Source: Paragordius varius
Lineage: Eukaryota > Animalia > Nematomorpha
Assembly (NCBI GenBank): GCA_964247055.1
Contig: OZ176054.1
Span: 8,618,001-8,682,000 of the forward strand
Direction: 5' to 3'
DNA: 64,000 nt
The translations under genes and the position numbers were made by a program. Positions within the stretch are counted from its first letter, which is position 1. Every line of letters starts with the position of its first letter. A model generated the notes under the pieces. The model made no database searches. It was given only the letters and a program-made list of their open reading frames with translations, and was not told the origin of the DNA. Positions 1-56,225 of the stretch are shown piece by piece.

Positions 1-3000
1 TAATCAACTTCAATCTAATATAGAAGAAAATTGCCAACCAACGGAGATGATTTCAGGCATAGTTGATGGGCAAGAGATCTCTGAAATGCCTGAAAATATT
101 ATGCCTGCGGAAAAAATACTTAAAAAATCCACAACAACGAATATTAGCGCAAAAGCTAAGTCCCAGCTTAACAAATACACTTATTCTGTTAAGAAGGGTG
201 CCATGGACACAATTGACTCTAAAAAAATTGTTCAAAGTCCCGAATATATTTTGTCACCAACACAAAAGGTTTTGTAAAACATATTTTAATAAATATATAT
301 AAACCAAGAGCAATTACCATTTCTAATATTTTAGTATGACTTAATTTGCAATACTATTTGATATTGTGCATACTTTTTAATTTAAATAACTTTATCTTTT
401 AGAAAGTTCCAAAGATTAAACGACCTCAACTTCATTTAATTTCCCCCATGGCTGATAGTTTATTTTATGAAGAATTGGTGAATGATGCTCTGAGCATAAA
501 GGATTGGCAAACTATTAATCCCTGGCAATACAGATTAGGTGTCATATTTTTATTAATTACGTTTTAAAATTTTAATGTAAGTGGATATTTGATTTGTCTG
601 TTTTAAACTAACAGAGTAGATATTAAATTATAACCAAATAATTAACTTTTATCTAAAATACCCAAAACTATAACATTTGCAACTCAAATTCACCCTTAAA
701 CAATCTGAAACCACCCTCGAGCAATTCTAATTTACCCTCGAACGTTTCATATTCATTCTTGAGCAATTCAAATCATCTTAAAAAATATGTTTTTGTATAT
801 TAAAATTTTTTATATTTTTTACATTTTTATAAAATATCTAAAATTAATATGATACTAAAATAACCATAAAGAAATTTTCAAATTAATGATAAGTTATTTT
901 AGCCCGAAAAAACATAATTTATTTTAGGTTGAATTTGAATCGCAAGGGTGAATTTGATTAGTTCAATGGTAATTTAATTGTTCAAGGGTGAATTTGGGTG
1001 ATTTTAATTTAATTTTCAGGGTCATATCTTTATTTAATATACATTTAAGTTGGTTAAGTCTCGCCCGCTGAGTTTTATTTTATGCGTAATGGTTGTATGA
1101 GCACCTATTATTTTACTATTGTTGTGATCTAGTTAAGTAAATCCATAACATTGAACCCAAAATTATCTATAATGAATTTGTGTTTTAAATATGTGCGAGT
1201 ATGTAGCTTTGGCATTTAATTATTGTTATCTGTTACCTTTACTGTTTGAGCACTTTTTGTGGACCCAAATACAAGATTTTCTTGAAATATATTAATTTAT
1301 TCGGTGTGACGGATAGATAAAGGATTTAAATAAAATTATAATGTTCCTTTATGAAAATGCAGAAAGCTGCGCTAAAACAACAATCGGTAATATATATTAC
1401 TTTTGTATCAATATTGGCTTCCATCAGGGCTCACAACGTTAAGTCCGTTACTTTTAAAATTATGGCTTCCAACCGGAACCCAGTTTCTGAGATTTTAGCA
1501 GGAACCGGTTCCTGGGTTAGAATTAACCCGGTCCCGCTTCCTCAGAAACCACCCCGGTTAACCAAAATTTTAGGAAACGCCCCGGTTCCATTTTTAAAAT
1601 CTTAGCAACCAGGCCAGTCTTGGTTTCAATTTTTGACTTTGGTTATGTAACTAAAGACATTTCCACCCAAGGAATATGTTACACACAGATGATTTGATAA
1701 TCACAAAAAAACAGCACACGAAGAAGTCAAAAGCTCATTCCTTCAATGGCACTTCTGTTACCGAAAGTATAGATTATGAACCAATGTACCAAAAACAAAA
1801 GTAATGATTATAGGAGATGAATACATAACTGTAAAATATTCATGCTCTATTTCTCACACCAAGATAACAACAAATGTCATTTTATGCATATCTTGTAAAT
1901 TTAATTCCACAAAAGGTGCTCTAAACATTAAAAGAACACAAGATATTATCTAATAATTTATCAATATCAATTCATAGAATATTTGAAGGAAGAACCATCA
2001 ACCTTTTATGTAATAAGCCCAAAAGATGTTATTGTTGGACGCACTCGAACCGAACAAGATCATATTCGGTGGATGGAGAATCATGGACAACTGGGTGAAG
2101 CTTTTAGAAAATCTCTAGCCTTTTATATTAGTATCGTGAATCAATTAGATATTAAAAGTATGTTTTATAATACAATTTATTGTAAATTGTTTAGTTTAAA
2201 GGATAGATTGTAGGTTTACTCTTCGTCAATTTTTTATTTTGGTAAATTCTCGAGACTTTAATGATTAACATAATTATTTTGAGCAGCCATTTCCGTTTGC
2301 TCTGCCATATATTTTATTTAAGATTTTTTAAATTTTTAAAACTGCGTTAATAGGTTTGACACAAATTAATACTTAATTTTAGGTTCTTTTTGTTTAAAAC
2401 TTAATCATCTTAACACTGAATTCAAATATAGTTTATACATATACATTATCGATTCCCTTTTGCAAAAAATTAAATTTTTTTTAATAAGTTTAAATTATAA
2501 TAAAATCAGGATCGCACTATGATTATATTTTGGCATGTATCATGCCATGATTTTGATTGCACTGAATATCAAAGTGCGACATAAGTAGGCTCTTTATAGC
2601 TCGTGTAAGAAAAAATATATATGATTCATCCTTTATTTTTCTAATGATATTTTGTATTTATTGAATGATTTAAGTAAATCAGATAAATATAAGAGGAGGG
2701 GGGCGGATTGAAAAAAAATATGGGGAAGAATCGCCACACAATATAAAAAATATAGTTGAATTTTTAATTTTAAGTCCGTATCCTTTTTGTTTAATTAAAT
2801 TTAGTACTTTATAGCTTACAACAATATTTTAAATATTATATTTTTTTATAAAAATAGTTAAATACCCATTTTTAATTGATTTTCCATTTTTATCTAAAAG
2901 CTCATCAGTTATTTCAATCAAAAAAAATATTTCAATTTTAACATTGGCTCAATATTTATTTCATACAGCCAATTTTTACAATGTTTAGAGACAAATTATA

Positions 3001-5441
3001 TGACTGAAGATATGTATCAAGGCTTGTCATTAGTGTATGAACTTTTAAAAAAATATGTCGAAAACTTGGTTACAATTGATTCCGAATATGATATGGCAGC
3101 TAGCTTAATAATCTATCCTTATTATCGATACCCGTTTATTATGGACTCGGATGAATTTGATACTAAAAGTAAATTGATACCTTATTATATAATTTTTGCT
3201 TTTGAAAGATCCTAAATGCAAATATATATATCTTTTATTCTTTTCCTGAAATCAAATGTAAATTACGCAACACAAGAAAAACTATAGAAAATACTGAAAA
3301 AATACTAACCGGTCTGACAACTCATAGATGTAGTCACCCGTGGTCATAAACGCAGTCATTATTATAAAAAATGTAAAATATATTTTGTAATTACATATAA
3401 AATCAAGTTAACGTTTAAAATGGTTTAAATTTTAAAAAGAGTTGAAACTGATATTTGATATAATTTGAAATATCACAGTTTTGTTTGTATTAAATTTAAT
3501 TTTTAAACTGGTATTTTCTAAAATTCAATCGAAATGTTTAGCTAGTTATTTTTCTAAGGCGTCACGCCATTAAATACTTTCATGACCGGTTAGTCCTAAC
3601 CAACCCACACTCTTCTACTCTAAAATTATTTAACAAGTTATCTACTTAGTCATATCTTGTGTTTTATAAAGCTGTAAATTAAAATAAGTGATTTTGTCTG
3701 TAGGTAAATTTTAGACAAAAAGTTTGAAAAAATGCCGAGATTGAGAAAAATCTTGATTTAAAATAAAAAAAATTATAAGTTTTGGTCAAAAAGTGTTGAG
3801 TTTGAAAAAATATATATAATAATTAAACTTATTCAGACCTTCCCATATTAACACCAAATTATGAAATGAAGATTAGAGACACTTTAATTGATTTGTGGAT
3901 TTGCGTTATACAATTATACGATCAATCAAAAAAATTGCTTAGTCTTGTATCAATAAACGATAATGGACAAAATCATACAGATACAAGCTCTAACATTTTA
4001 AACATTCCACCAATCAATGCTAATAAAAATGTAAATTAATATTTTATATAAACTATTAATCTATATATTTCATGCTTTAATAGCTAGAGAAGAACCATTA
4101 AATTTAGATCCCTTTTATGTTAAATAAGCGCAATTACCCTCATTTTCCATAATAAAAGTACGATTTAACCCAAAGAGTACATTTTTCAGCCATATTTGCC
4201 TTCATAAAAAGGCTTGAATTAATATTTTGTTTTTGTTTTGTGAAAATTGCTTAAAGTCAACATATAAGATTTTTTGTGCATTTTCAATATCAAATGTTTT
4301 AGACAAAACTGTATATTACGATTGAACTCGATGCAAAATGGTATCATTGTATAATTAAACATTGTATAACTCAAAGTCACCAATCGCAATCAATCAAAGC
4401 GACCAAGGTTTACCTTATCATATTTTGAAATGTTGATATTTATTAAATTTCCTTTTATTAATTATCATTTATACATAATTTAGAATTGTATTAAATCAAA
4501 TTTGAATTTGTTTTAATAATATTAACACTTTTTTACCATATTAACAAAAATACAAATTCATAATATTTCCCTTAAAATATTGCACCAAATTGGTGCAATT
4601 AATGTAATTTTTTTTGAATTAAATATATTTTGCCCCTTTTCTAAAATTATTGAAAATATACATATAATCTTACTTACTTACTTGATACTTGATGGCTTTT
4701 TGACTTCATGTTTGAAAGTTTTCATTTGCGGTCTTATTCCAAAGGTCCTTATCTAGACATTTGGTAATGTCGAGGTTTAGTATTTTTATGTCATTTTTAA
4801 TGTTGTCGCTCCAGGAATGTGTTGGGCGCCCTTTGCTGTTGTTTCCAAAGGGTTGTATGTGCTAAATGGTTTGGAGAGGGTGGTCGGTTTTTCTTCTTTC
4901 AATGTGACACAAGTATTTAAACCTGCTTCTTTGTATAAACTTTTCTATTGTGTCATTTTTGTGTTTAAGATGAATATTGTAGTCAGAACAGCAAGCTTTA
5001 ATTATTTTGTTTTCCGTATTTATCATTTTGTCAAGATTTGTTTTATTTAGGGGCCATGTTTCGGTGGCGTAAGTAAGAGCTGGCCTGTCACCTGCTTTGT
5101 ATATTAGCCATCTATAATTTATTTGCTTTTATTAGATGACCATTAATATTATATTATATCTTTTATCACTTAGGTTTTGAAAGATATTATAACAAAACTA
5201 CCAACCAATCTGTATGATACGGGTTACATTATAGAAACCTTGAAAGATACATTACATTCAAATTCCCAAAACTCTCCCGAACTCCTATTATGTTTGGCCC
5301 TATTGTAACTTTTTTTTGAAATTATTGAAAAACAATACATGTAATCGGAACCGGAATAATTTCTTTTCAGGCCGTTTATAAACCGAAACCAGGGTTCTAA
5401 AAATATTTTTATTAGTATTAATACCATGTTAACAATATTAT

Positions 5442-5482
<41 letters not shown>

Positions 5483-8400
5483 TATTTTTAAAAATTCTTT
5501 AAAAAGGTAGCGCACAATAAAATTTTGTTGTGTTAATATCATTTATATTGAATGTATGCTCATTTAGCTACATCGGTATTCAAAATTCAGTAATATTATG
5601 ATTAAACCCTCCCTATCTGCCAAAAACATTTTATCACTTAAATTTTTTGGACTATAATCTTGTTTTATAAGTCTCAAATCGGATTCACAAACAAAAAATT
5701 TTGGATAGCCGGTAGCAGTTCCGGTTTTAATCCCAGAATAATTTGACTTATATCATATGAATTAGATACATTAACAACAAAGATTATATGGACGCTTTGA
5801 AAATATATGTGGAATGTAATTGTAAGCTTGAAACATTTGGAATTTTAGAGCATGATGCTAAAAACCAAATCTTTTTACTTCAAAAATTGGTGAAAGCTGT
5901 CGAGATAGGAGAACAGTGCTCAATTTATTCGCTGTTTGCCATAGACCCTGAGAGAACTATCGGATTGTTAATCAAAAACAGATTTGATGTAAATGAATAT
6001 TTATACCATTATATATTCTTTAATATCATTTATCTTAAACGCCGTATTATTTGATTTTCGATTTATTATAAATTATTTAATCTAATTTTATTGTAAAATT
6101 AGATTAATATACCTAATTATGTGTTAAGTTGAACGATCGATTTAAATCAGTTAAAGTTTTAGTTGAAATACTGTTTCCAAGTTATTTTAAAGATAAAAAA
6201 ATATTTTAACACAAAGTTAATCAATTGGGATCCATGTTAATTTCTATAAAGCAGCATGATTATTAAGTTTTGTCTCAACTTAAGCTTGCTTTTATTTTTT
6301 ATGTTCTCAATATAGTTTTAAATACTTATCTCAATTATTTTATTTTCTTATTATACGTTAATGTTTTGCTGAAATTATATTAATTTAGTTAAACCTAGAT
6401 GATATCCTTCAATTGCTAGCAAAATATGATATCAAATTGGAGCTACAATATTTACATGCCTTGTTTGAAACAGATAATACATTTGGTAAAAGATATCACG
6501 ATTTGCAAGTAATGTTACCTTTGTATAATACAGATTGAGCTTTACATCAAATATGATACATGGAAATTATTAAGTTTCCTAAAACGCAGTCAACATTATG
6601 ATTTACAAAAGGCTTTGGATTTATGCCTCAAACACAAATTGTACCGTGAATCTATTTATATTTATGGTAATTTCTCAATCGGAAATATTTTAATGTTAAA
6701 ATTTTGGTATTGTTAACACGCCGTAAATGTTTAGCAAATTTATAGAAAAAATATACTATATGTTTTATCCTATAAGTTTTTTGGTTTGATTAGGACATTT
6801 TAAGAAAATATTATAATTTTTATCTATAGTAAAAACTGGTAATACAAAGAAAGCTTTGTATCTCCTGGTTAAAAGTCTTAAAGATGTAAACGGTGCTATA
6901 ACATTTTGTAAAGAACATGATGAAATCGAACTTTGGCAGGAACTGATTCAACTTTCAATCGATAACCCTGGTATATTTTAAGTGATTTTTTTAGTAATAA
7001 GCTTAAACTTAAAGTTTTTTTATTGCAATAAGGTAAATAAATGGTAGATTACATGATCAAATTGTAAATATTTGCTATTAAAGGAATTTTTAAAATGCGT
7101 CAGCTAATGGTATATTCAATTATACATTGCTTTTACAGTAAAATATGTAATTATCTGGACGAATTTTTTAACTAACGGACATAATTTTTTTATAAGAGAC
7201 AGAGTGTTAAAATCAAAAGATTAAAATTTTTAATTGGCGGACAAATTTTTTATTATACGGACAAATTTTTTTTTAACGGACAAATTTTTTTTTATACGGA
7301 CAAATTTTCGATTATACGGACAAATTTTTTTTTATACGGACATAAATCCGAAATATAATAGGGTAAAAGGATCACTTATCTATAACACTGGACAACATTT
7401 CTGCCACTCGAGTTTTTTGCATTTTTTGATATTTAGTATCATTCTAACAGTAAGTCTAAAATAAAATTTATAACTCCTTCTAAGAATTTTGTATAATTTG
7501 ATAGTTTTGATTATGCGCCCTCTTTATCAATATTTTACTAAAAAATGTTTTTATTTGAAAATATACAAGTAATGCCCATTTGTAATATAAAAAAGTAATA
7601 AAAACATTATAAAATATATACTAATAGGTATTACATCGACACTTATTATTGGACACAGATAGCTACAAACGCGCGAAGCGAGAACATTTTTTTAAATATT
7701 ATAATTTTAAAACTGGATGAAAATAGCTCAAACTTTGTTTAGTTGGTGATGAATGTCCAAAAAAGATAACACAAGAAAGTTTTTTTGTGTGAAATATTTT
7801 TTTATTGCTTTTATGTCACTCAAAACAGCCATTTTTCGGTTTTTTGTTTTTTAAAAATTACCATCTCATCAATAATAATTTATTTTCTTTACGAGGCTGA
7901 TTATTTCGAAATTTTAAAGATAAAAACAAAGTTTAAGGTATTTTTGATCTTTTATAGCCATTTACAGTTATAATTATGCATTTTAGTATCCACTAGGTAA
8001 AATATTTATGATAATAATAATAATTTTAAAAAGACAAACCAAAAGCTGTTTCAAACATTTTTTTTAATTTAAATTCTTATATAACGCTATTAATTATATT
8101 AAAATAATTTATATGATTTTCAAAATAGTTTGTCTGCGAAAATTCTTGATTTATATAAGGATTGAAAATTTCGACCTTAAATCCAAATAACTTTTATATC
8201 CGATGATATAAATGACTTTCCACCATTAAGATGCAGTGTTTTGCGCACTTTCGAATGATATAAAATTCATGGCTTCATATCTAAAACTTTTAATTTAAAA
8301 ATTCGAGTTTAATGTTAAATCGGGGCTAAAAATTATCGATAAACTCTAATATTAAAAAAATCTTTAATGCTAGACCAATTCTCTTTTAAGATATACTAAT

Positions 8401-11400
8401 TATGTACTTTAATGAAATAAATTTTAAATTTACAAGAATGGCAGTTAAATAAAGTTAAAATTGTTGTCTAGTGTAATATTGATAAATAATAACCCTATGA
8501 ATTCTAGTCGGTTAAATGTTTACTTTGTATTTTATAAGAAGCTTTAAAATTATAACATAGCATTTGATATTCACCGACTTAAGAATAAACCATTTTTGAT
8601 TTAATATTAACTAATATATTAAATGAATAGGATATAATAAATCTCGTATTTAACTAAGGCACAATATTATTTCATTTGCATTCTATTTGTAAAATTAAGA
8701 AAAACCGTATCATTACTATATTCATTTTAAAGAAACCTCTTTACTATTGAAAAATAATAATTCAATTTTTCATCTTATTTTTACAATGTTTCCATTCTTA
8801 TAATAAGGTTTAATCGAAAATATCAATAGTCTGGGCTTCTACACTGACTGTATTATGTAACATATCAACTCTCTTTATTATATTGTTAGGTGGGACAACT
8901 TTCAATTAACGACATGATGGGACTCTTCTTAATATTAAACATCTACCGTATAAGCTCAATAAGCAGACGAGTAAATACTAATCGTCTGCTTTTAACATCA
9001 ATTATAACTGCAATATAATGTAATAGAGACAATAATTTATTAATATAATATTTATATGAAAATAACATCAAAATAAATCGATGGTAAAAAATTCCATATT
9101 TAAATCTTTCTTATTTTGGGCTCGTAATTTGTGTTTAAATTCATGGAAAATACACTCAATAGGGTTTAATTGAGGTGAATATGGTGGCAAAAAAATTAAA
9201 TTTTCGAATTCTTTATTTCGAGAATAACGATGAATAGGGGCATTATCCAAAATTATATAGGATGTTGAAGGTATTATTCTAAAACATTCCTGTAAAAAAT
9301 GATATATATCATCCCCATTGTATGGGTCAGATTTATATTCATATTTTATCATTCTGTTTATTCCAATCATAGCCAAATAGTTTAATTCAGATGAAGATGG
9401 CGATGACGGTGAGAATGATGGTGAGCGTATAATTGAACGATTTTCTGTGCAATCATCATAAAATTCTAAAGGTGAAATAATATATTACCATAGGTGTGAT
9501 CCATTAATAATTACTATAGGCCGAATAAAGAGTATTAAATATAGATAATGTTAAAGTTTATTAAAATTGATTAAATTAAGATGAAAAGATTATGGATACA
9601 CGTAAAAAAATATTAATTAGTTAATAATTTATCATAAATTAAATTTGATTATATTTAAGATGAAAAGACTATGGGTACAAAAAGAACAAAATTATTAATT
9701 AATAAAATTAATAAATTTCGAAATTTGATATGTGTACTAGGTTTTTTGACAGGCGAGCAATAGATTTATACATATATTTAACGTATACATATTATTGGTA
9801 GTCTATTTACTTTATTTTTTGTTCCCGTTTGGCGATAGTTGCGTATTGATTAAAACATCGAATAGTTAAATTTACATTTTTTTTATCTTACAACCATAAC
9901 TAAATATTTAAATACGGCCAAATTTATTTTATGTTATAAACTACTGTATTATCATAAGACATAAGTCAAATATAAAAATGGAATTAGGTACCGAATATGA
10001 GTTCATTTTAATGAACGCCCCTGTCAAAAAACCTAGTACACATATCAAATTTCGAAATTTATTAATTTTATTAATTAATTATTTTGTTCTTTTTGTACCC
10101 ATAGTCTTTTCATCTTAAATATAATCAAATTTAATTTATGATAAATTATTAACTAATTAATATTTTTTTACGTGTATCCATAATCTTTTCATCTTAATTT
10201 AATCAATTTTAATAAACTTTAACATTATCTATATTTAATACTCTTTATTCGGCCTATAGTAATTATTAATGGATCACACCTATGGTAATATATTATTTCA
10301 CCTTTAGAATTTTATGATGATTGCACAGAAAATCGTTCAATTATACGCTCACCATCATTCTCACCGTCATCGCCATCTTCATCTGAATTAAACTATTTGG
10401 CTATGATTGGAATAAACAGAATGATAAAATATGAATATAAATCTGACCCATACAATGGGGATGATATATATCATTTTTTACAGGAATGTTTTAGAATAAT
10501 ACCTTCAACATCCTATATAATTTTGGATAATGCCCCTATTCATCGTTATTCTCGAAATAAAGAATTCGAAAATTTAATTTTTTTGCCACCATATTCACCT
10601 CAATTAAACCCTATTGAGTGTATTTTCCATGAATTTAAACACAAATTACGAGCCCAAAATAAGAAAGATTTAAATATGGAATTTTTTACCATCGATTTAT
10701 TTTGATGTTATTTTCATATAAATATTATATTAATAAATTATTGTCTCTATTACATTATATTGCAGTTATAATTGATGTTAAAAGCAGACGATTAGTATTT
10801 ACTCGTCTGCTTATTGAGCTTATACGGTAGATGTTTAATATTAAGAAGAGTCCCATCATGTCGTTAATTGAAAGTTGTCCCACCTAACAATATAATAAAG
10901 AGAGTTGATATGTTACATAATACAGTCAGTGTAGAAGCCCAGACTATTGATATTTTCGATTAAACCTTATTATAAGAATGGAAACATTGTAAAAATAAGA
11001 TGAAAAATTGAATTATTATTTTTCAATAGTAAAGAGGTTTCTTTAAAATGAATATAGTAATGATACGGTTTTTCTTAATTTTACAAATAGAATGCAAATG
11101 AAATAATATTGTGCCTTAGTTAAATACGAGATTTATTATATCCTATTCATTTAATATATTAGTTAATATTAAATCAAAAATGGTTTATTCTTAAGTCGGT
11201 GAATATCAAATGCTATGTTATAATTTTAAAGCTTCTTATAAAATACAAAGTAAACATTTAACCGACTAGAATTCATAGGGTTATTATTTATCAATATTAC
11301 ACTAGACAACAATTTTAACTTTATTTAACTGCCATTCTTGTAAATTTAAAATTTATTTCATTAAAGTACATAATTAGTATATCTTAAAAGAGAATTGGTC

Positions 11401-14400
11401 TAGCATTAAAGATTTTTTTAATATTAGAGTTTATCGATAATTTTTAGCCCCGATTTAACATTAAACTCGAATTTTTAAATTAAAAGTTTTAGATATGAAG
11501 CCATGTATTTTATATCATTCGAAAGAGCGCAAAACACTGCATCTTAATGGTGGTAAGTCATTTATATCAATCGGATATAAAAGTTATTTGGATTTAAATG
11601 GTCGAAATATTCAATCCTTAAAGAAGTCAAGAATTTTCACAGACAAACTATTTTGAAAATCATATAAATTATTTTAATATAATTATTAGGGTTATATTAG
11701 TATTTAATTTAAAAAAATGTTTGGAAAAGCTTTTGGTTTGCTTTTTTAATAAAAATTATTATTATCATAAATATTTTACCTAGTGGATCCTAAAATGCAT
11801 AGTTATAACTGTAAATGGCTATAAAAGATCAATAATACCTTAAACGTTGGTTTAATCTTTAAAATCTCGAAATAATCAGCCTAAATTATTATTGATGATA
11901 TGGTAATTTTTAAAAAACAAAAAACCGAAAAATGGCTGTTTTGAGTGACATAAAAGAATAAAAAAATTATTTCACAAACAAAAACTTTCTTGGGTTATCT
12001 TTTTGGACATTCATCACCATCTAAACAAAGTTTGAGCTATTTTCATCCATTAGTTTTAAAGATATATTAATTAAAAAAAATGCTCTCGCTTCGCGCGTTT
12101 GTAGCTATCTGTGTCCAATAATAAGTGTCGATGTAATACATTTTAGTATACATTTTAAGTTTTTATTACTTTTTTATATTACAATAGGGCATTACTTGTA
12201 TATTTTCAAATAAAAACATTTTCTAGTAAAATTCTGATAAAGAGGGCGCATAATCAAAACTATCAAATTATACAAAATTCTTAGAAGGAGTATAATTTTT
12301 ATTTTAGACTTACTGTTAAAATGATACTAAATATCAAAAAATGCAAAAAACTCGAGTGGCAGAAATGTTGTCCAGGGTTATAGATAAGTGCTCCTCTTAC
12401 CCTATTATATTTCGGATTTATGTCCGTATAAAAAAAATTTGTCCGTATAATCGAAAATTTGTCCGTATAAAAAAATATTTGTCCGTTGAAAAAAAATTTG
12501 TCCGTATAAAAAAAAATTTGTCCGCCAATTAAAAATTATAATCTTTTGATTTTAACACTCTGTCTCTTATAAAAAAATTATGTCCGTTAGTTAAAAAATT
12601 CGTACGGATAATTACATATTTTACTGTAAATTATAAAATGCGCCCAAAATTGTTGATAATATTGATGGCCTATATTTTGATAGAGTGGAGAGCTATTAAT
12701 TGGGTAAAATTATTTTTAAATCATTTTGATGCAAATATTTTTTTTGTATATAATTTTATTTATAAGCTAAAACAAAAAACTATTTTATTTGTAAGATTTT
12801 GTGACCTTACTTTTACAAAACATTGGATCATACATTGATCCTATACTATTGGTACAACAGATTCCAGATGGTTTGAAAATTAATGGATTACGTAATTCAT
12901 TGATAAAGATAATCAAAGATTATCATTTGCAGGTATGAAATTATTAATATTTTTGAGTTACCATAGGCAGTGTCGCAATTTTTTTAAAAAATATTATGTA
13001 AAACATATGCGGTTAAACTTTGGACCGACATAAAGAGAATATTTGGTTTAATTTTATTATACAATTACAATTAGCGACATCATAAAAAAAGATTAGCAAT
13101 ATTTCGAATACTTTTAATTTGGTTTAACAGCTCGATTAATAAAATATGCTAAAATAAAGTAAAAATAACTTGGTATATGGATTTTATCATATTTTTATTT
13201 ATCCTAATACTATTTTTATTTATTTAAGATGGAATTAAATGAATGTGCAAAAATGATTGTACAAACTGATAGCGACCATTTAGGAAAAAATTGGTACAAA
13301 GCCTTAAAGCAGCCATATAAAATTACCAATTACCCATTTATAGAAGATAACATGATGAATGATCAAAAAAATCGGTTCGACTTTATAATTTTTTACATAA
13401 TGTTCATAGCAATTATATATATTATTTATATATAAAACAATTAGTTCTGTTCAAAATCTCATTTGTGGACTTTGCAATGGAAGCATACACAAACTGCCAA
13501 AGATTTCAATATCAACGGATTTTGTCATAAATCCAAACACGATTAACCCATTTGAGGATAGTCGTGAGGAGATGAACGAAAATAAAAAAAATTTGATCTA
13601 TAAATGTCGCCATATGTATCATTCCGTTTGCTTGAATATGCATAAAGATTCGCTTTTGCAGTCTGAAATAATCAAATCAAAATTGGCAATGAAGGAAAAT
13701 TTAGGACCTAGATCACATAATAAAACTGTTATGGTAAATTTTAGTATTAACTTTAACTAATATATACTTATATTGAATCGCATAAGAGAATCTCAACCGC
13801 TTATCATAAAGAAAATGATTTTTTTTGTTTGTGCATAATATATTTAAATTTTTCCAAATATTTGAAATCATAAATATTTAACCTATAATTATGTAAAAAT
13901 GATGTTTTTATCAAATATACAAAAGTTGTAAGTGTATCCTTCCGGTATAATACAAAGTAACATAAAACACGCTGAAAAATTTAATAATCGATAAAAATGC
14001 ACTTTTTATACTTAATTCAAATAAGGTATCGCCAAGCGTGATCTTTTTGATGTTTATATAAAATCAAATGCATTAATATGCATCCGATGTTTTAGTAGTG
14101 AGATTTATGTTATTTACGATTTGATTTATATTGCTATTATGCATTTTTTTGATTTTTAATATTTTTTCTCACCAGGTTGGGATAATTACAATTTTTATCG
14201 AATAACAGATCACAAACAAAATTTTATATATTCTAGTAGAATGAGGTGCATTTGGTTTATGCACCTAAGAAAGATATTTTCACTTTTATGAAGTAATTGA
14301 TCCATATTAAAATTAGCGCATCCTATCAGAATTTTTTGGTAAAAACTAAAGCTTCACAAAATATTTTATTAATAGAAAACAGTTTTTAATTGGACATAGT

Positions 14401-17400
14401 CTCCAAATGTCTCCTCGGTTGTTGTTAAAATAAACGCAAAAATGCCACAGACCTGGTGTGCATTCGAGAAATATATTGGGCATTTGTGAAAATTTTGGAT
14501 TTTAAACCTAAGTGTATATGATCACAATAAAGGTACTTCTTATTTTACCAATTTTTGCCAGTTTGTTGCCAAACAATCGTATTTAAATAACTAGTTTGAG
14601 AAATACCAATTTTATTAAGTGTCAATAGCATATTTTTGGTAATTATAAAATTCCATATTTATTTGGAATTTCGAATCCGTGGTTATCATAAAATATTTGA
14701 GAGGATCGCATTTCGGACACCTTTGTTCTAGACTATGACATCAAAAAAACTTATTAAGAAATGCATAGTTTGTGAAATTTAAAATTTACTTAAATTTTTT
14801 GTTTTAAAACATGGTGGAAACGGTATAAAAATACTTTTTCTCTATAATAATATAATGCTTCCAAAGATCTATATTAGATGAAAGGGTTCATTAGCTATCA
14901 CCTATAATTAAATTTTTTGAAAAAGCAATATATAATAAATTAAATAAGACGCACAGTTTTTCAATAAAAATTCTGAGGTGTCAGAATCTTCATTAGCATC
15001 GATTTATATAGAAAAGGCGTTTGCTTTCATAATATCATAAAGGGATGTGCCGTTTTTACCATACTTTAATATATCATATACGCTTCAACAAACATTTATC
15101 CAAAATATTTAAGCAACGTATGCATTTTCAGCCATAGATATTTTTGATGTCATTATATAGCATAAATAAAAATTGCTATCTCACATTTTTGCATTTTTAA
15201 GAGCACTAGCCCATTTTTAGGGATCCGAAAACTGGAGATTTAGCTCACGTTTATATTTAATCTATATATTTATAAAAATGGAAAATGCTGGCTTTGTGAT
15301 CTGGTACAGGAAAACCGGTAGACCCATTCAAATCCAAACTTCGAAAAAATATAATCATTAATAAATGCTCCGACAATAGCTTCGCCCTTTTTTTGAAATA
15401 GGCCCCCAGTTTGGGCCAACCCTGTGTGAAAAACAGGTTTTTTTGAAACAGAAGTCCACAAAAATCGTGTCTTTGAGACAATTTTCTGGAGAACGTTTTG
15501 GACCATTCAATTTCAAATATGATTTTTGTTTACTTATTTTCGATTGCGCCGAACATAGTCGAGTCACTTTTTTGATTTAGGCCCTCTTTTTACCCGCTCC
15601 CCCCCCCCCCAAAAAAAATGCCATTTTTTTCAAAAAACAAAGTCCACAAAAATAATTTTTAAATCGATTTTTCGCTCTAGGCATGAGACCGTAAAAATTC
15701 TATATGGATTCCACGTATTTCCTGTTGAAAGGCAAAAATTTTAGTCAGGCGTTTCTTTGATGATAGCTGCTGGGTAAGGAGCTACCCGCTAACTGATTCC
15801 TCATGTAACTTTGTGATCTGTTTCCGGAAAACCGGTGGACCCAATCAAATCCAAACATCAAAAAAATTTAATCATTAATGAATGCCCCGACAATAGCTTC
15901 ACCCTTTTTTGGAATTAGGTCCCCAGTTCGGGCCTACCCCGTGTGAAAAATGGGTTAAGTCAATTTTTTGGAGAACGTGTTGGACCATTCAATTTCAAAT
16001 ATGATTTTTGTTTACTTATTTTCGATTGCGCCGAACATAGTCGAGTCACATTTTTATTTAAACCCTCTTTTTACCCGCTCCCCCCGTAAAATGGCATTTT
16101 TTTCAAAGAACAAAGTCCACAAAAATAATTTTTAAATCGATTTTTCGCCCTAGGTATGAGACCGTAAAAATTCTATATGGATTCCACGTATTCCCTGTTG
16201 AAAGGCAAAAAATTTAGTCAGGCGTTTCTTTGATGATAGCTGCTGGGTAAGGAACTACCCGCTAAAAACTGATTCCTCATGTAACTTTGTGATCTGTTTC
16301 CGAAAAACCGGTAGACCCATTCAAATCCAAACTTCGAAAAAAATAATCATTAATAAATGCCCCGACAATAGCTTCGCCCTTTTTTTGAAATAGGCCCCCA
16401 GTTCGGGCCAACCCCGTGTGAAAAACAGGTTTTTTTTGAAACAGAACTCCACAAAAATCGTGTTTGAGACAATTTTCCGGAGAACGTGTTGGACCATTCA
16501 ATTTCAAATATGATTTTTGTTTACTTATTTTCGATTGCGCCGAACATAGTCCGTCACTTTTTTGATTTAGGCGCTCTTTTTACCCGCTCCCCCCGTAAAA
16601 TGCCATTTTTTTCAAAAAACAAAGTCCACAAAAATAATTTTTAAATCGATTTTTCGCCCTAGGTATGAAACCGTAAAAATTCAATATGGATTCCACGTAT
16701 TTCCTGTTAAAGGGCAAAAATTTTAGTCAGGCGTTTCTTTGATGATAGCTGCTGGGTAAGGAGCTACCCGCTAAAAACTGATTTCTCATGTAACTTTGTG
16801 ATCTGCTACCGGAAAACCGGTAGACCCATTCAAATCCAAACTTCGAACCCCCCCCCCCCCCCCCCAGAAGTCCGAAGGACTTCCTCGGGCTGCTTAGCAG
16901 CACGAGATTTACGCTAGTTTAATATAAATATTGTTTGCTTTTTTTAATATGATACATTTAATATTATATTTTGGATTCAAGAATCAGGTTGTAAAGCATA
17001 AAATTTGCCAAATTTTGATATGGAGCAATAATCTCAAAAGTCTAAATAGTTGTCCAAGATGACTTGAAGCCACGAGTTCTTAAGAGGATCCTGACACAAT
17101 AGTATCTCAGAATATTTTTATTTCATAATATTATTTATTTACCCACCCATTTTGTCCACCTTATAGGAATAGTGTTTTGTCTAAGGGCTTCGAAATACTA
17201 TACCCGCTAAATTTTTTTTCTGATATAAATTTAATGATATCTTAATCCCCTAAATAAAATATTCTTCCCTCGCTTCATTGCATTCCTTATAAACAAACTC
17301 CCTTATCAATCGGTTTTGAAAGCGAGTTAACATACAAATTATGAATATTATTTGATTTTTCAAATATATTTTTGATATATTATATAAAATATTTTGGATT

Positions 17401-18918
17401 CACGCTTTTAGCTCCATCCAAAAAATTAATATAACATAATTTACGAATTCTTTGATATGGAGCAATTATAAAGCTGGATGTTTTAGGTTTCGCAAGACCT
17501 AAATTTTTTTATGCATTTTTATATCAGGAATATATGGGCATTATTAGCTTTGTTTGAGCCGGTGTAACTTTAAAAATTCAACAGAAAGATTACCGTTCTG
17601 TTTATCATGTAAGCTTATAATCGCTCTAAATTTAGTCCATTTTAAATTTTTTGCTCATATTTTATTAATTTCCAACCTTATTAAATAGTTCGAAATCGGG
17701 AGGTTCTAATGAAATATAGATATTCTGATAAGTCAATGTATCAGGATTCTCAAGATGCTCTTGGCACTTATCAATGTTATAAAGAAGTTATTCGCACTTT
17801 TGTAGTAACTGCTTGATAACAAATCGCAAAACGCTAATTATATTTGTTAAAATGGGTAGCTAAATGTTTCATTACGACAAATTTCATAATATTATATTTA
17901 AAAGGTTAAACAAAATTTTTAAATTTGAATTTTTAGATGTGTGTTCCGAAAGTCCCAAATTTTTTAATTACCCCAAAATGGGAAAGTTTTCTAAAATTAA
18001 ACGCGTAAATGCCGATATTTTAAGATATTTTTTTTCCAGATTATATGGCAGCAAATAAACATATGTTGGAAAAGGGCATACTTTGTCAAAATATTAATTT
18101 TTAGCAAATTTTTTTAAAGCGTAATACATGCGATTATAAAGCATGAAACAATATAAACGCTTTCTATATAATTTAAAGTTGCTGAACATTTCTCTCACAT
18201 TTAAATTTTGGTTGAAAAATTGGTACGTCTTCCAATTTATGTTAAATATATATCCCGTTTTTGTAAAACCCCAAATTAAAAAGCAATAAACCTTTAAAAT
18301 TCTGAGTAAATATTTAGCCGAATTCGATTGAAAAAATGTTATAGCGCTCTATACCATTTCCACCATGCTATAACATAAAATTCGCTTCTTCTGAAATTTT
18401 GCTACGAATTAAAGTATCTATTTTTTGAAAAAAATTTTTTTTATGTCAAATACATTTAAAAATTTTATCGTGCAATCTTAGTATGGATTTATTTTAAGTA
18501 AATTTACCCATTTTTAGCCAAAATTTGCGTTTCACCATTTTCTTATATGGAGCATTTATTACAAAATTGGTAATATTTTCTTATGCCCACCAGGAGAATC
18601 CTGATGCATTTACCTTCCGACTCTATATATTCAATATTTTTGAACAATATTCATTGTGTTTTACAATTATTTTTCCAAAATTTTATTATGTACACGCATG
18701 TAGTCAGCTAGCTTTAAAGGAGTATATTATAATAAGCTATATGTACACAACATACATAAAATTTATATGTTAATTATCTTTTTCGGCACTTTAGACTGCA
18801 ATGTTGATTATTTTTCCTATTTTTTTAGGACTTAATCTGCCCTCTTTGTTGGATTATGACAAAGTTTTTGAAAGAATCAGATACCATTCCATTAAATATG
18901 TTGAATACCCCTTCTTAA
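1..18918 (+). CDS. VPS41: Vacuolar protein sorting 41 (HOPS subunit), multi-exon, 5' partial
   Basis: In-phase GT-AG exons: <1-268, 403-538 (KRPQLHLISP..DALSIKDW..YRL), 1978-2157 (EYLKEEPSTFYVISPKDVIVG..DHIRW), 2989-3168, 3837-4030 (3' boundary uncertain), [exons in 4031-5765 unresolved], 5766-5988, 6389-6508, 6534-6666 (IELYIKYD..LQKALDLC), 6830-6970 (GNTKKAL..ELWQELIQLSIDNP), 12796-12932 (LLQNIGSYIDPILLVQQI..LRNSLIKIIKDYHLQ), 13229-13374, 13445-13733 (CGLC..CRHMYHSVC), 18829-18918 (CPLC, stop). Motif order matches the Vps41 propeller end, clathrin repeat and RING-H2 as I recall them. Confidence 0.92.
670..1020. mobile_element. Degenerate MITE, TACCATTTAC-type family with ~21-bp AAATTCACCCT subterminal repeats
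   Basis: Repeated aaattcaccct-like units at the left and agggtgaattt units at the right; same layout as the copies at 56579-56885 and 57798-58123. Ends are eroded and coordinates approximate. Confidence 0.6.
3304..3594. mobile_element. Small MITE-like element
   Basis: Inverted repeat actaaccggtc (3304-3314) / gaccggttagt (3584-3594). No clear target-site duplication. Confidence 0.4.
4669..5050 (-). mobile_element. 5'-truncated RTE-clade non-LTR retrotransposon, 3' end
   Basis: Minus strand translates to ..IQRSRFKYLCHIERR..(stop)..KGRPTHSWSDNIKNDIKILN..DKDLWNK, stop at 4706-4708, followed by a (TAAG)n tail at 4669-4683. This is the typical RTE C-terminal GH..R / GRP..W.D / DR..W pattern. Confidence 0.8.
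7238..7345. repeat. Subterminal ~20-bp tandem repeat (CGGACAAATTTTTTTTTATA-like), left arm
   Basis: cggac starts at 7238, 7258, 7277, 7297, 7317 and 7337. Confidence 0.9.
9068..9504 (-). CDS. IS630/Tc1/mariner-type DDE catalytic-domain ORF, left copy
   Basis: Mirror of 10269-10705 (paired coordinates sum to 19773). YIILDNAPIH and FLPPYSPQLNPIE motifs. Predicted exons 9504-9489 and 9465-9068. Confidence 0.75.
10269..10705 (+). CDS. IS630/Tc1/mariner-type DDE catalytic-domain ORF, right copy (137 aa if the 23-nt intron is spliced)
   Basis: ATG 10269; candidate intron 10285-10307 (gtaatatattatttcacctttag); open frame to 10705. LDNAPIH..LPPYSPQLNPIE are signature motifs of this superfamily. No N-terminal HTH region. 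Confidence 0.75.
12419..12524. repeat. Subterminal ~20-bp tandem repeat, right arm
   Basis: Six gtccg units, the reverse complement of 7238-7345, with some unit differences. Confidence 0.9.
15261..16917 (+). mobile_element. Non-autonomous Helitron in the last VPS41 intron
   Basis: 5' A|TCTATATATTTATAAAAATGG at 15260/15261; 3' hairpin tcgggctgc-tta-gcagcacga, then CTAG (16914-16917)|T. A-T insertion site, no TSD, no Rep/helicase ORF. Confidence 0.85.
15292..16847. repeat. Tandem array of ~500-bp units inside the Helitron (3 full + 1 partial)
   Basis: Units begin with ctttgtgatct at 15292, 15809, 16285 and 16794 (517, 476 and 509 bp). Unit 2 carries a ~40-bp deletion. Confidence 0.95.
17700..18250. 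repeat. Old dispersed repeat family (ttagatgt..ccgaaagt..caaatttt core)
   Basis: Similar core near 17935, 29187 and 37384, with inverted copies near 30080-30350 and 37730-38010. Highly diverged; boundaries approximate. Confidence 0.5.
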
Positions 18919-52280: not shown

Positions 52281-55200
52281 CGTCTTTGATCTTAGGGACC
52301 TATTACTCCTTCATGCATATGAATGATGATTTACGACAAAAACTAAATCTTTTCAATATAACGAATATTGCACCGCCTCTCTCATATGAAACATCTCAAG
52401 TTTGGTCTGATTGGCCAGATTCACGCGGCATTTGGATAAACGAAGACGAAAATTTAGCCATGTTAGTAAATATAATTGATCATATGCAAGTGCTGGCTTT
52501 TAACAAGGGTATTTATTTCCCCATCATATATATATAATATATATTAATGTGACCAGATAAGCTTTTTTTCGCAGTACAGTACTGAGTTTTCGAAAAAAAC
52601 CTGCGCCTGTACTGCCCTGACTTTTGTACTGTTTTTAATTTTTTTGAAATATATTAATTACCTTTATTTATATGAAAAAATTAATGTAGAATTTTATATA
52701 GTATTTAAAAAATTTTTTTTGGTAAATATTAAGATTGACCTATTTTTAATTGGTTTAAATTCTATTTTTGATTGAGTTATACATGAAATCGGGTTTCAAA
52801 CCGGTAAAACCGCTTAAAGGCAATCGAGCAGTGGCGGAAATAATTCTTTCAACTGTAAGATTTAAGCTAACGACCCTTTAACTCAGGGTTTCCGCAAAAG
52901 CAGCCTCAAAATATAAAATAAACAGAAAATGAATTCATAATATTTTAATAATAATTTGACCAAATTTAAAAGTTCGATGTTAGTTTCATTTGTTTCGGTT
53001 AATTGTGGGATATTTTAATTGTTTCCAATAAGCTAATAAATAGTAAATAACTATATCATCTGATAAACACCGCAGCAAAGATCTGGTTTAAAAATAGGCA
53101 AGGTATTTTTTAATTTTGCACTGCGCCAGGGTTCTAAATATCTGGTCACATTATTAAGAAAGCTGTTATTATAGGCCATTTGAGTATATTAAATGGCTAT
53201 GGGATTTGTGTTAAATTTCTGTTGCCATGTTAAAGATTTTTTGTTATTATTAGTAAATTTAGAAAATTGAGGATTAAAAACAACATGTTCAATTAAATAT
53301 ATAACTTATAATATGAATCTCATGGATAGCACCAGACACCTAAATCAAATCTACTTTTAGCCGCTTAAAATACTGAAATGTCTTATAATAATCTCTCATG
53401 TATTTTATTGCCTTATGATTAACTAAAGTTTAAAAAATTTTAATGTTTTAATAGATTACTCCATATCTCAACCGTTTGTCCAAGCTAGTCAATTCGTGAC
53501 ATCGATGGAAAACGCTTTGTTACAATTAGGTTACTGTTATGTGTGGAGCTTTGAAAAGGGCTTTCTAACAACCAATCCCAACCTGACTGGTACAGCTATG
53601 GTTTGTCAAGCAGCCATTGTAGAAAATGGGCCAACCATCGATGAACTCTGTACATTGTACAATAATACGGGCTTGATTAATGAAAAGATGAGGCTTCATT
53701 TTAGCTGTAATAATGATCAAACATGTGTTCACTCTTTACCATTTATGCCGATTCAAGAGTTAGAACAATATTACAACTTTATTATATTATTGGCTTGTCA
53801 CCTATCGCAATCATCGAATGAAACATCAAATGGATGGGAATTTGTCAAGGATTACAACTTATGCTTGAATGAAAATACTGAAAATGAGTACAATATGCAA
53901 TATCCTCTTCTAGTTCGCCAAAACAATATTTTAGCCACCATACTTACCGTGCAAAATTATAAGGAAGCTAAATTGTTGTCGCGAGAAAATTCTAACAATC
54001 GTCATTTAAATTTTGACACTCTAATTCTACTGGGTAAAGAGGATATATTAAACCAATCGCCTTATCCCGACGGAATGTTATGTAGTAATTTAAGGGCATA
54101 TACCATCTATGAAGATTTGATCAATCAACTTATGGATCAAAAAGAGCTTAGGGCCTATGAATTCTGGAAAAAATTCCAAGATTTATCCAACATAGACCTT
54201 GATATGAAATTTCCATTCGATAATTTTATTTCCGATTGCTTTATAATGTCTGTTGCCAACTTGGAAAATTTTTCATTTGTGCCTTTTATGAGTGAAGAGG
54301 AATTGCTGCAGATATCCTCTGATTCTGAAGTTATTTTTTCATCTATTGAACCTAAGATTGATGGAACATTTTATGATAATATTGACCATAAAAGTATCAA
54401 TAAATTGGGTGCAAAGACATTCTTTGAACCATATTGGGACGAATCAAAGCTTTTATTTAACAATTGGCCAAAAGGGAGATGCGTTTGGATATCTAAAGAT
54501 GAATCCATAGTTTGTTGGATTAATGAAACAGATCATTTTAAAATGTTTGCTTTATCACAAAACCAAGGAATATATAAATTATGGGAACGTTACACTCTTA
54601 TTACAAATGTACTTAGACAAAAATTGATAACGGAAAAAGCAGGCAAAACCGAAATTTTATCAACTTTCCCCTCAACAGCTACCGCTGAATATTATGTTGG
54701 TTTCATTGTTAAAGCCAAAAACCAGAATATAAATTATCTAAAAAATATCTTCTACTTCACAGGATTTCAGGTTGTGAATGAACACGTAAGTAATGGAATG
54801 ATAGAAATTTGGCTAATTGATCAGGCCACTGAACTTCCAGAAGATGCCAACGAGGAAGACAAAGCCCAAAATTATCTTAAACGCATGAATCTTATGCTCA
54901 CAAAAATTTCATATTTGCGATTTATGATTAAACATAGTCATAGTGCAGAAATACTCGATGATGCATTCCGTGAACTTAAAGTAACCTGTAACACTATGGA
55001 ACAAACAGAAAATAAACCAATGTGTAAAGACTTATTGATAAAAAACTTTAATAACTTTCCAACCATTACAAACAAACGTACGGCTTTGGCCAAATCATTA
55101 ACTCCTGAATTATATGCAGAGTTAAGTGAGTTTAAAACTTCGCACGATTTCACGCTTGATGATTGTATCCAAGTTGGTCTTAACAATCAAAACACATATT

Positions 55201-56225
55201 TTTCGGGTTTTATCGCTTTCGACGAGGAATGTTATGATTTATTTGGCGAGATAGTTGATAAAATATTGGAAGTTTACACCAAAGATAGAGTCACCACACA
55301 TCACATAATAAAGGAATTATCCTTTTATCCGGACACACTTGAATCCTTTGATGATGAATATGTATTTTACATTGAACTTGGTGTTATTAGAAACTATGAG
55401 GGGTTCCCTTTAATAGCGGGTTGTAAGTTAGGCCACTTTCACAAAATGGAAGAAATGACAAATAGTATTTTGAAAGGCATTTCTTCACAAATAAAATGTA
55501 CGCCATTTTCATCGATTCCCGAGGAATCGATTGATACGTTTCTAACCGAATATTATGGTACTAACTCAATCATTCATTTTTCCCCGCAACTCAAAAAATA
55601 TTGGCCACGATGTCGCGCAAAGCAGGCCATTGTATCAAAATGTTTTTCACAAAGAGACCTAGAAACAAATAAAATATATACATTGTTTGCTAATGTAGAG
55701 GATCATGTACAATGTTTTAGCACATTACAAAACATGGATATCTGGACACAGTTCAGGGAATTCCATAAATTCATTTATGCACTTGAGAATGAGCTTATGG
55801 CCCAGTATAAACTTTCATTTATGAAGCATGATAAATATGGTTACGTAACAAGTGACCCTATAAACTTAGGTGCAGGTTTTATCCTCCGTTTAAGGCTAAA
55901 ATTACCCAATTTCATAAATGTTAACCCAGCGAATTCTAATACCAAAATAATGCCAAACAATAACTTGGACTATGATATTACCAATATGAATGATATTAGC
56001 AATGAAAAAATGGATAGTATAACAGTAATTAAACGTATCGTAAGCCATTACAATATTAGAATAGTGAGCTGGGATGATCCAATATTAGAAATTATAAATA
56101 GTACATGTTTTGGTTATTCAGAAGTTGAAATAATACAACAAATGATAGATTGTTGCAAAGATCTCATACGTAAAGATATGGAATCTCAATTAACCAATGA
56201 ATCATCAAACGATAATCAAAAATAA
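47265..56225 (+). CDS. Three-domain creatine-kinase-like (ATP:guanido phosphotransferase) protein, predicted catalytically inactive, ~1538 aa
   Basis: Exons 47265-47322, 47693-47976, 49160-49415, 49989-50532, 51045-51241, 51774-52067, 52296-52508 and 53455-56225 join in phase (4617 nt). CK-type motifs: ILTPNLY..ISLDKCIRPGVDN, SRIERRQVE, DWPDSRGIW, SLTPELY..FTLDDCIQVG, GYSEVE. Confidence 0.88.
52545..53153. mobile_element. MITE-like element in the last intron of the kinase-like gene
   Basis: 15-bp perfect inverted repeat taatgtgaccagata (52545-52559) / tatctggtcacatta (53139-53153). Target-site duplication ambiguous. Confidence 0.5.

Follow-up and report, generated by a model that had tools for sequence, protein, structure and literature searches.

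How does a transposon come to consist almost entirely of its own inverted repeat, with its only coding sequence lying inside the repeated arms? The question is raised by an insertion in a 64,000-nt stretch of the Paragordius varius genome (contig OZ176054.1, positions 8,618,001 to 8,682,000; this whole stretch is called the window, and all coordinates below are positions within it). The window is AT-rich, with ~26% G+C. The insertion occupies 7136-12626 (5,491 bp) within a VPS41 intron and is composed of two inverted arms around a 266-nt spacer, such that the arms account for 5225 of the 5491 nt (95%). It is a polymorphic, non-autonomous foldback element of the IS630/Tc1/mariner superfamily, and we think it probable, with considerable reserve, that its palindrome arose by inverted copying of one half of the element, that is, by extension of its terminal inverted repeats (TIRs).

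The architecture given in an earlier note on this DNA (two ~2.6-kb inverted arms, a 266-bp spacer, and ends in which TA is followed by CAGT on the left and preceded by ACTG on the right) is present in full in the sequence. The left end reads ...GCTTT TA followed by CAGTAAAATATG..., and the right end reads ...ACTG followed by TA AATTAT. The terminal 20-mer CAGTAAAATATGTAATTATC is identical at both ends, in inverted orientation, and occurs at no third place in the 64-kb window. Tandem repeats were called with Tandem Repeats Finder (TRF), which recovered the 20-bp subterminal repeats that the same note had reported: in each arm two 21-nt units come first, and a 20-nt unit is then repeated 5.3 times. 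The exact motif CGGACA is found seven times per arm, at 40, 102, 122, 141, 161, 181, and 200/201 nt from the terminus and always in one orientation relative to it. Counting both strands of the whole 64 kb, 14 of the 19 CGGACA occurrences fall in the arms of the element and five lie outside. Judged from sequence, the arrays are most likely candidate sites at which several molecules of a transposase supplied in trans would bind.

The superfamily assignment is based on a TA target-site duplication, 5'-CAGT inverted termini, and DDE_3 homology with the D, D, and E residues in place. The Tc1/mariner affiliation proposed earlier therefore stands on three legs, with the TA duplication demonstrated by a length-exact empty site (below) in addition to the CAGT termini and the DDE_3 remnant. 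Long inverted arms that make up most of the element, together with subterminal tandem repeats, give it the structure of a foldback transposon. In Tc1/mariner elements the terminal repeats normally measure tens to hundreds of bases, and repeats of 2.6 kb with the sole coding remnant inside them far exceed what has been described for this superfamily. Two other assignments were tried and discarded. A miniature inverted-repeat transposable element (MITE) of the Stowaway-like type, which is non-coding and shorter than ~800 bp, was ruled out by the length of 5,491 bp and the presence of DDE remnants. The Drosophila FB family proper was ruled out by the duplication, which is TA rather than 9 bp, and by arms made up, apart from a transposase remnant, mostly of unique sequence. 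The element was scanned for Rfam families and tRNAs, with no match.

That the insertion is genuine was established from contigs of four public runs (X1 to X4; X2 is from sample S1 and X3 from sample S2) aligned to 6886-12880 of the window. The earlier note had proposed a search for empty sites, and one was found in X3, exact in length and with one TA. In this contig 7124 is joined to 12627, with nine substituted letters between and a single TA. When rebuilt, the joint has 28 nt, as against the 28 nt expected without the element and with one TA, and differs by four substitutions. The contig has a depth of ~250 vs ~450 for the contig of the shared exon, and a flank contig that adjoins the empty site on the same haplotype shows six further differences at a depth of 221. 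The X3 joint comes from another haplotype, on which the site is unoccupied and without a footprint. The occupied allele is seen in X2, where a contig covering 12606-12810 with zero differences runs from a base specific to the right arm, at 12606, into the right flank. This right-junction contig has a depth of 132 vs 272 for the neighboring shared contig, and on the left the contig of the near flank (7004-7115) likewise has half depth (152 vs 295). The insertion is genuine and segregates in the sampled material, and as it is still segregating, the family has been active recently.

Filled and empty alleles differ at 8 positions in ~150 nt of intron (flanks 6886-7135 and 12629-12880), a very high haplotype diversity. 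Note also that X1 and X2 are recorded as one sample, yet their major alleles differ at 6918 and 6948, and several genotypes may have been pooled in the samples.

The coding content is reduced to remnants. Two identical open reading frames (ORFs) of 102 amino acids point outward from the center, at 9068-9376(-) and 10397-10705(+), and the piece 9068-9463(-) matches Pfam DDE_3 (PF13358) with an E-value of 2.8e-14 over profile positions 31-138 of 146. The "two outward-pointing DDE ORFs" of the earlier note are thus present, outward in direction and DDE_3 in kind, and they sit within the inverted arms as claimed, but to regard them as transposases was an overstatement. Each is a remnant of 137 amino acids that matches the profile of its relatives only at positions 177-285 of 325 and lacks a helix-turn-helix (HTH) domain. 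The length of 137 residues is obtained by removing a 23-nt GT-AG phase-1 intron, which leaves an ATG-initiated ORF that is open in both arms. If this putative micro-intron is spliced, the transposon gene would carry micro-introns of the host style.

Relatives of the remnant were sought among 1.84 billion representative proteins. At a cut-off of E<=0.001 there were 785, the best of them only ~40% identical. Full-length relatives have 320-345 residues, with HTH domains preceding DDE_3, and the remnant aligns to about residues 170-300 (the last ~130 residues), with a C-terminus ~40 residues shorter than theirs. The catalytic D, D, and E are kept in this alignment (FYDD, D73, and E103), and the second D is separated from the E by 29 residues, a spacing shorter by about six than that of the aligned relatives. 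When 58 of the full-length relatives were combined into a profile and all six frames of the element, spacer included, were searched with it, each arm matched at the positions given above with 113.8 bits, and there was no other match in any frame. Three weak tblastn matches at 9769-9887(-), with E-values of 2-6, had raised the possibility of N-terminal coding sequence in the inner arm and spacer; it was rejected, as the profile search gave them no backing. The complete transposase with N-terminal paired HTH domains that characterizes an autonomous element is absent. Because the remnants are without the DNA-binding (HTH) domain, the element is non-autonomous and cannot move itself. An exact look-up of the 100-amino-acid ORF in public collections found no match, and a word-based protein search returned only matches of <=39% identity over most of the query.

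The element belongs to a multi-copy family, as seen from the k-mer depths of the four runs. These depths are read as relative contrasts and not as copy numbers; the contrasts are large and repeat across X1-X4 (values for X1 are in Table 1). The termini and the DDE segment are comparably multi-copy, at ~12-24 times flank depth. Far more abundant is a module within each arm, at ~70-900 times the flanks across the four runs (~70-630 times for the left module in X1). The module is bracketed by inverted ACACTRGACAACA-like motifs (at ~7385 and ~8465) that resemble the subterminal unit CGGACAAATTTT, and an inverted pair (7523-7553 and 8456-8486) lies within the module of the left arm. In another copy an inverted joint centered near 11756 links 11717 to 11795. 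The motifs and this joint suggest that an abundant short foldback relative exists. Contigs from other copies also contain many internal-deletion joints, for example from 8115 to 12466 and from 11686 to 12025. The depth of the DDE segment hints at longer, possibly full-length relatives of at least 95% identity elsewhere in the genome. No further copy of the element, module included, was found in the window, where a single 28-nt chance match was the only hit, and two metagenome scans, one with the terminus and one with the module motif, gave no copies. Within the element, the depth of the DDE segment (8886-9485) exceeds that of its neighbors on both sides by a factor of 3-6.

A trace of how the palindrome formed is the way in which identity varies along the arms. 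By global alignment the arms are 96.7% identical overall. The outer zone (7136-7522) shows 97.1% identity, with 11 substitutions and 2 gap columns, and the middle zone (7523-8267) 93.3%, or 90.2% counting gaps. From 8268 inward identity is nearly complete. The step is sharp: there are ten differences in 8137-8267 and then none for 1,425 nt. Of the substitutions between the arms, 16 are transitions and 45 are transversions, 30 of the latter being A/T, with no editing-like or deamination-like bias. The step falls within the abundant module, the innermost 219 nt of which are 100% identical between the arms. A contig of X4 that covers 8147-8297 with zero differences at single-copy depth crosses it. 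Because both this contig and the abundant module continue across 8268, the step is a boundary of recombination or conversion and not the end of a nested element. The sharp step at 8268 means that the arms' inner 1.5 kb was duplicated or homogenized much later than the outer part.

A two-tier identity would also result if a young palindrome (8268-11505) had landed in the exact center of an older 2.3-kb foldback. Such a nested insertion is scarcely credible, given that neither 8268 nor 11505 has a terminus or TA duplication, that the alignment of the arms is continuous with no leftover loop of the outer element, and that the high-depth module and the X4 contig cross the boundary.

Formation of the palindrome in a single step was also considered, a head-to-head dimer of one half of a parent element being one of the two readings offered by the earlier note, with a distinct foldback family as the other. 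A head-to-head dimer could be made by snap-back priming on microhomology (the arms end ...GACAGG and CCTGTC...) or by alternative sister-chromatid transposition. Its arms would be identical at birth, and the outer part would have diverged afterwards, converted ectopically by the abundant copies of the module. The non-palindromic loop of 266 nt is the leftover expected of snap-back priming, and the zone in which the arms differ most, 7523-8267, is also that of the high-copy module. Moreover, inverted duplications of Ac arise by alternative transposition, according to a preprint (bioRxiv 10.1101/2020.01.07.897926). However, the identity step at 8268 is a feature that a simple one-step dimer would not predict. 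The terminal 387 nt, which lie outside the zone of strongest depth, differ by 2.9% vs 0.07% for the inner arms, and the 100% identity of the module's innermost 219 nt shows that module membership alone does not cause divergence. We therefore regard a one-step origin as improbable, and a snap-back dimer as less likely than the accounts that invoke repair or conversion.

Could the inner palindrome (8268-11505) be a product of assembly or of the reads, the inner region being single in reality? The inner arms match almost perfectly, T rather than C stands at 9900 in contigs from sample S1, and the exact central 326 nt were found in none of the available public runs (two runs contain 0.22 and 0.13 of its 32 words). 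Hairpin centers are expected to drop out of short reads, a loss that could account for the missing center. Relatives of the spacer, with 95-99% likeness to it, occur at a few times flank depth. The outer arms, which are themselves 3-7% diverged with indels and are each joined to their own unique flank, continue in exact register into the inner arms. A false fold-back would be neither centered on the element nor supplied with a 266-nt loop. One mismatch (9693/10080) distinguishes the two inner arms, and in X1 the exact inner-arm contigs are ~520-1150 deep, which fits two arm copies on one haplotype. An artefact is thus very improbable.

A more serious competitor, although still an unlikely one, is that the element belongs to a long-standing palindromic foldback family which moves as a 5.5-kb unit. 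The tiers would then be due to arm-to-arm conversion spreading outward after insertion, as in large genomic palindromes. In keeping with this, the spacer and the inner arms are at several times flank depth in three runs, and the high allelic diversity gives time for divergence in place. Against it, the excess depth of the DDE segment over its neighbors suggests that the neighbors differ in most relatives, and no second copy has been read in which the central junctions are demonstrated to be shared.

The account we favor, extension of the inverted ends, would begin with a deletion-derivative relative that already had long inverted ends and an already truncated transposase gene. A break in one long inverted end would have been repaired off the other end, by homology-directed repair or gene conversion. 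The copied tract would start at ~8268, pass the old repeat, and run inward through the 3' part of the transposase gene, such that internal sequence was copied inverted over the other half and joined the inverted repeat. On this account the inner 1.49 kb is 99.9% identical and the outer 1.13 kb only 93-97% identical because the recently copied tract starts near 8268. The sharp step would then be a record of inverted ends growing by taking in internal sequence. The element would travel as a passenger: a related full-length Tc1/IS630 transposase would bind the CAGT termini and the CGGACA arrays and move it by cut and paste between TA sites.

Several observations weigh against extension. The junctions at 9753-9754 and 10019-10020 rest on the assembly, and the sample that provided the right junction is also without the exact center. 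That the inner region was formerly single-copy is an assumption, as no parent copy is in hand. Allelic divergence is high (8 in ~150 nt), and the 3-7% divergence of the arms could arise in place, in which case the outer tier may be no older than the insertion. Ectopic conversion from module copies in the genome, rather than age, may account for the extra divergence of 7523-8267. Extension and arm-to-arm conversion spreading from the center of an older palindrome appear not to be separable here.

Table 1 Features of the element and its surroundings, with k-mer depths in run X1 (a dot marks a feature without strand)
Feature	Position	Strand	Basis or remark	Depth in X1
VPS41 intron holding the element	6971-12795	+	GT at 6971, AG at 12794-12795, exon reading frames	
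TA target-site duplication, left copy	7134-7135	.	Sequence; single TA in X3 empty-site contig	
TA target-site duplication, right copy	12627-12628	.	Sequence; X3 empty-site contig	
Left arm, 2618 nt, opens with CAGT terminus	7136-9753	+	Repeat finding, arm alignment, terminus search	
Right arm, 2607 nt, closes ...ACTG	10020-12626	-	Repeat finding, arm alignment, terminus search	
Central spacer (loop), non-palindromic, 266 nt	9754-10019	.	Repeat finding	1,900-2,600 (spacer bins)
Left subterminal array, seven CGGACA motifs plus one more degenerate, 20-21 nt apart	7154-7342	+	TRF, motif positions	
Right subterminal CGGACA array	12421-12608	-	TRF, motif positions	
High-depth module, ~1.1 kb per arm	7290-8486 and 11287-12480	.	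Depth bins, four runs; boundaries good to ~200 nt	56,000-740,000 (7290-8485 and mirror)
Inner tier of left arm	8268-9753	.	1 mismatch in 1486 nt (9693/10080) vs partner 10020-11505; 99.9%	
Left transposase remnant; ATG exon 9504-9489, intron 9488-9466, exon 9465-9068	9068-9504	-	Pfam, relatives' profile, spliced-ORF check (splicing predicted)	
Right transposase remnant, twin identical to left, intron 10285-10307	10269-10705	+	ORF list, profile, spliced-ORF check (splicing predicted)	
Direct-repeat pair, ~79 nt each, 79% alike, near the inner end of the arm	9560-9729; mirror 10044-10213	.	Repeat finding	
Flank				~790
Terminal 150 nt				~12,000-15,000
Segment between module and DDE segment	8486-8885			2,800-5,300
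DDE segment and 3' flank	8886-9485			9,900-18,900

Foldback elements with similar outlines are known from other animals. Drosophila FB elements and the palindromic TA-flanked elements of nematodes have long inverted arms, subterminal tandem repeats, and little or no coding sequence. FB elements make 9-bp duplications and have arms built almost wholly of short repeats, and the nematode palindromic elements are MITE-sized. Neither is known to carry transposase remnants in both arms, and the mobilizing enzyme is unclear for most foldback elements. The element described here is a multi-kb foldback tied to Tc1/IS630 through both its ends and its transposase remnant. Despite its structure it belongs neither to the Drosophila FB family nor to Galileo.

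Galileo, a P-superfamily element, nevertheless provides the precedent for extension. Its "2RT" copies, of the form TIR1-F1-F1'-TIR2 in Drosophila mojavensis, have been ascribed to repair with the other TIR as template, the copied tract entering internal sequence (PMC3573991). The likeness lies in a foldback-like form, long TIRs with tandem repeats, internal sequence recruited in inverted orientation, and a family with many deletion derivatives. In contrast, Galileo has a P/THAP transposase and a 7-bp duplication instead of DDE_3 and TA, and whereas its TIRs reach ~1.26 kb and the recruited pieces are spacer, the arms here measure 2.6 kb, form 95% of the element, and include a partial transposase gene (PMC3573991).

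Thon and Sardine, IS630/Tc1 elements of the Paramecium germline, resemble the element in their DDE_3-type transposase with a short spacer between the second and third catalytic residues, their TA boundaries, and unusually long, internally complex TIRs of 425-700 bp (PMC3464196). They differ in having a ciliate host and in being of autonomous type, 6-7 kb long with several ORFs between the TIRs (PMC3464196), whereas the animal element has its only, truncated coding sequence inside the arms. Maize Mu killer is a partial inverted duplication of a transposase gene with two like terminal repeats, placed such that read-through gives a hairpin RNA (PMC3440606). The same arrangement is found here, with identical twin remnants at 9068-9504(-) and 10269-10705(+) and like termini. 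Mu killer belongs to the Mutator superfamily in a plant, and its silencing has been shown genetically (PMC3440606). In contrast to Mu killer, the present element keeps both termini and the target duplication and may still move.

The position of the element in its host gene bears on this last likeness. The earlier note had placed it in an intron of a housekeeping gene, and that gene proved to be VPS41, the flanking exons of which match the Vps41 profile in order. Exons 6404-6508, 6537-6668, and 6817-6969 match the Vps41 TPR-like profile collinearly at positions 196-221, 223-265, and 266-312 of 333. The exon downstream of the element-bearing intron is one that we take to belong to VPS41, as judged by eye against VPS41 sequence. 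The intron measures 5,825 nt with the insert and 333 nt without it, and 165 nt separate the element from the 5' splice site, with ~168 nt on the 3' side. The intron flanks, 6971-7135 and 12629-12795, were no more alike than shuffled sequences, and the idea that an older foldback makes up the rest of the intron was rejected on that ground. Two introns upstream of the element, at 6509-6533, VPS41 has a GT-AG intron of only 25 nt.

The introns examined in VPS41 are of 25 nt, ~130-150 nt (about 6669-6816), and 333 nt, and micro-introns and ordinary introns thus coexist in one gene. Among animals, introns as short as the first have been described only in myxobolid myxozoans and in Dicyema (PMC13644364). 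Judged by intron size alone, the host would be sought in one of these two groups, in a lineage noted for extreme genome reduction and for the shortest introns of any animals (PMC13644364); proteins resembling the phosphagen kinase encoded in the window gave no information on the host.

Given its intronic position in a transcribed gene, the VPS41 pre-mRNA must hold a 2.6-kb inverted repeat with transposase sequence. By analogy with Mu killer, it is conceivable, although we consider it doubtful, that the palindrome works at the RNA level, both by looping the insert out for splicing and by giving rise to double-stranded RNA that silences the transposon family. In VPS41 pre-mRNA that reads through the element, the arms would pair as a stem of 2.6 kb, perfect over the inner 1.49 kb. 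This stem would loop out the 5.5-kb insert and let a spliceosome adapted to introns of ~22-27 nt join the exons, and the double-stranded RNA containing transposase sequence would silence the family as an animal counterpart of Mu killer. If true, looping at the RNA level would explain why foldback-shaped elements are tolerated in the introns of this genome. The RNA runs listed, which are tiny in size, contain none of the queried words. A hairpin intron of 5.8 kb in the same gene as an intron of 25 nt is a natural test both of the splicing of large inserts and of RNA silencing.

Tiny introns and a TA boundary followed by CAGT, which resembles the end consensus of Paramecium internal eliminated sequences, had prompted a ciliate reading of the locus. 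It was rejected on the grounds of an animal gene and the standard genetic code. Nearby genes encode a PRDM-type PR/SET domain (E 3e-28) and C2H2 zinc fingers, and a phosphagen-kinase ORF of 932 codons contains no TAA or TAG, with 33 CAA and 7 CAG codons. The PRDM-type PR/SET gene and an ORF of this length without TAA or TAG indicate an animal that uses the standard code and not a ciliate. An ORF scan with genetic code 6 gave only noise. The empty form sits on a different haplotype (four substitutions in 28 nt plus single-nucleotide polymorphisms in the flanks), which also counts against an internal eliminated sequence.

The phosphagen-kinase-like ORF lies at 53427-56222, has two ATP-gua_Ptrans stretches and one N-terminal domain (Pfam), and ends in TAA, TAG, and TGA consecutively. 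Between it and the element, at 15290-16850, are three to four tandem units to which Rfam gave no match. They are ~475-517 nt long and 69-94% alike, and they form the only G+C-richer stretch of the window (36-38%).

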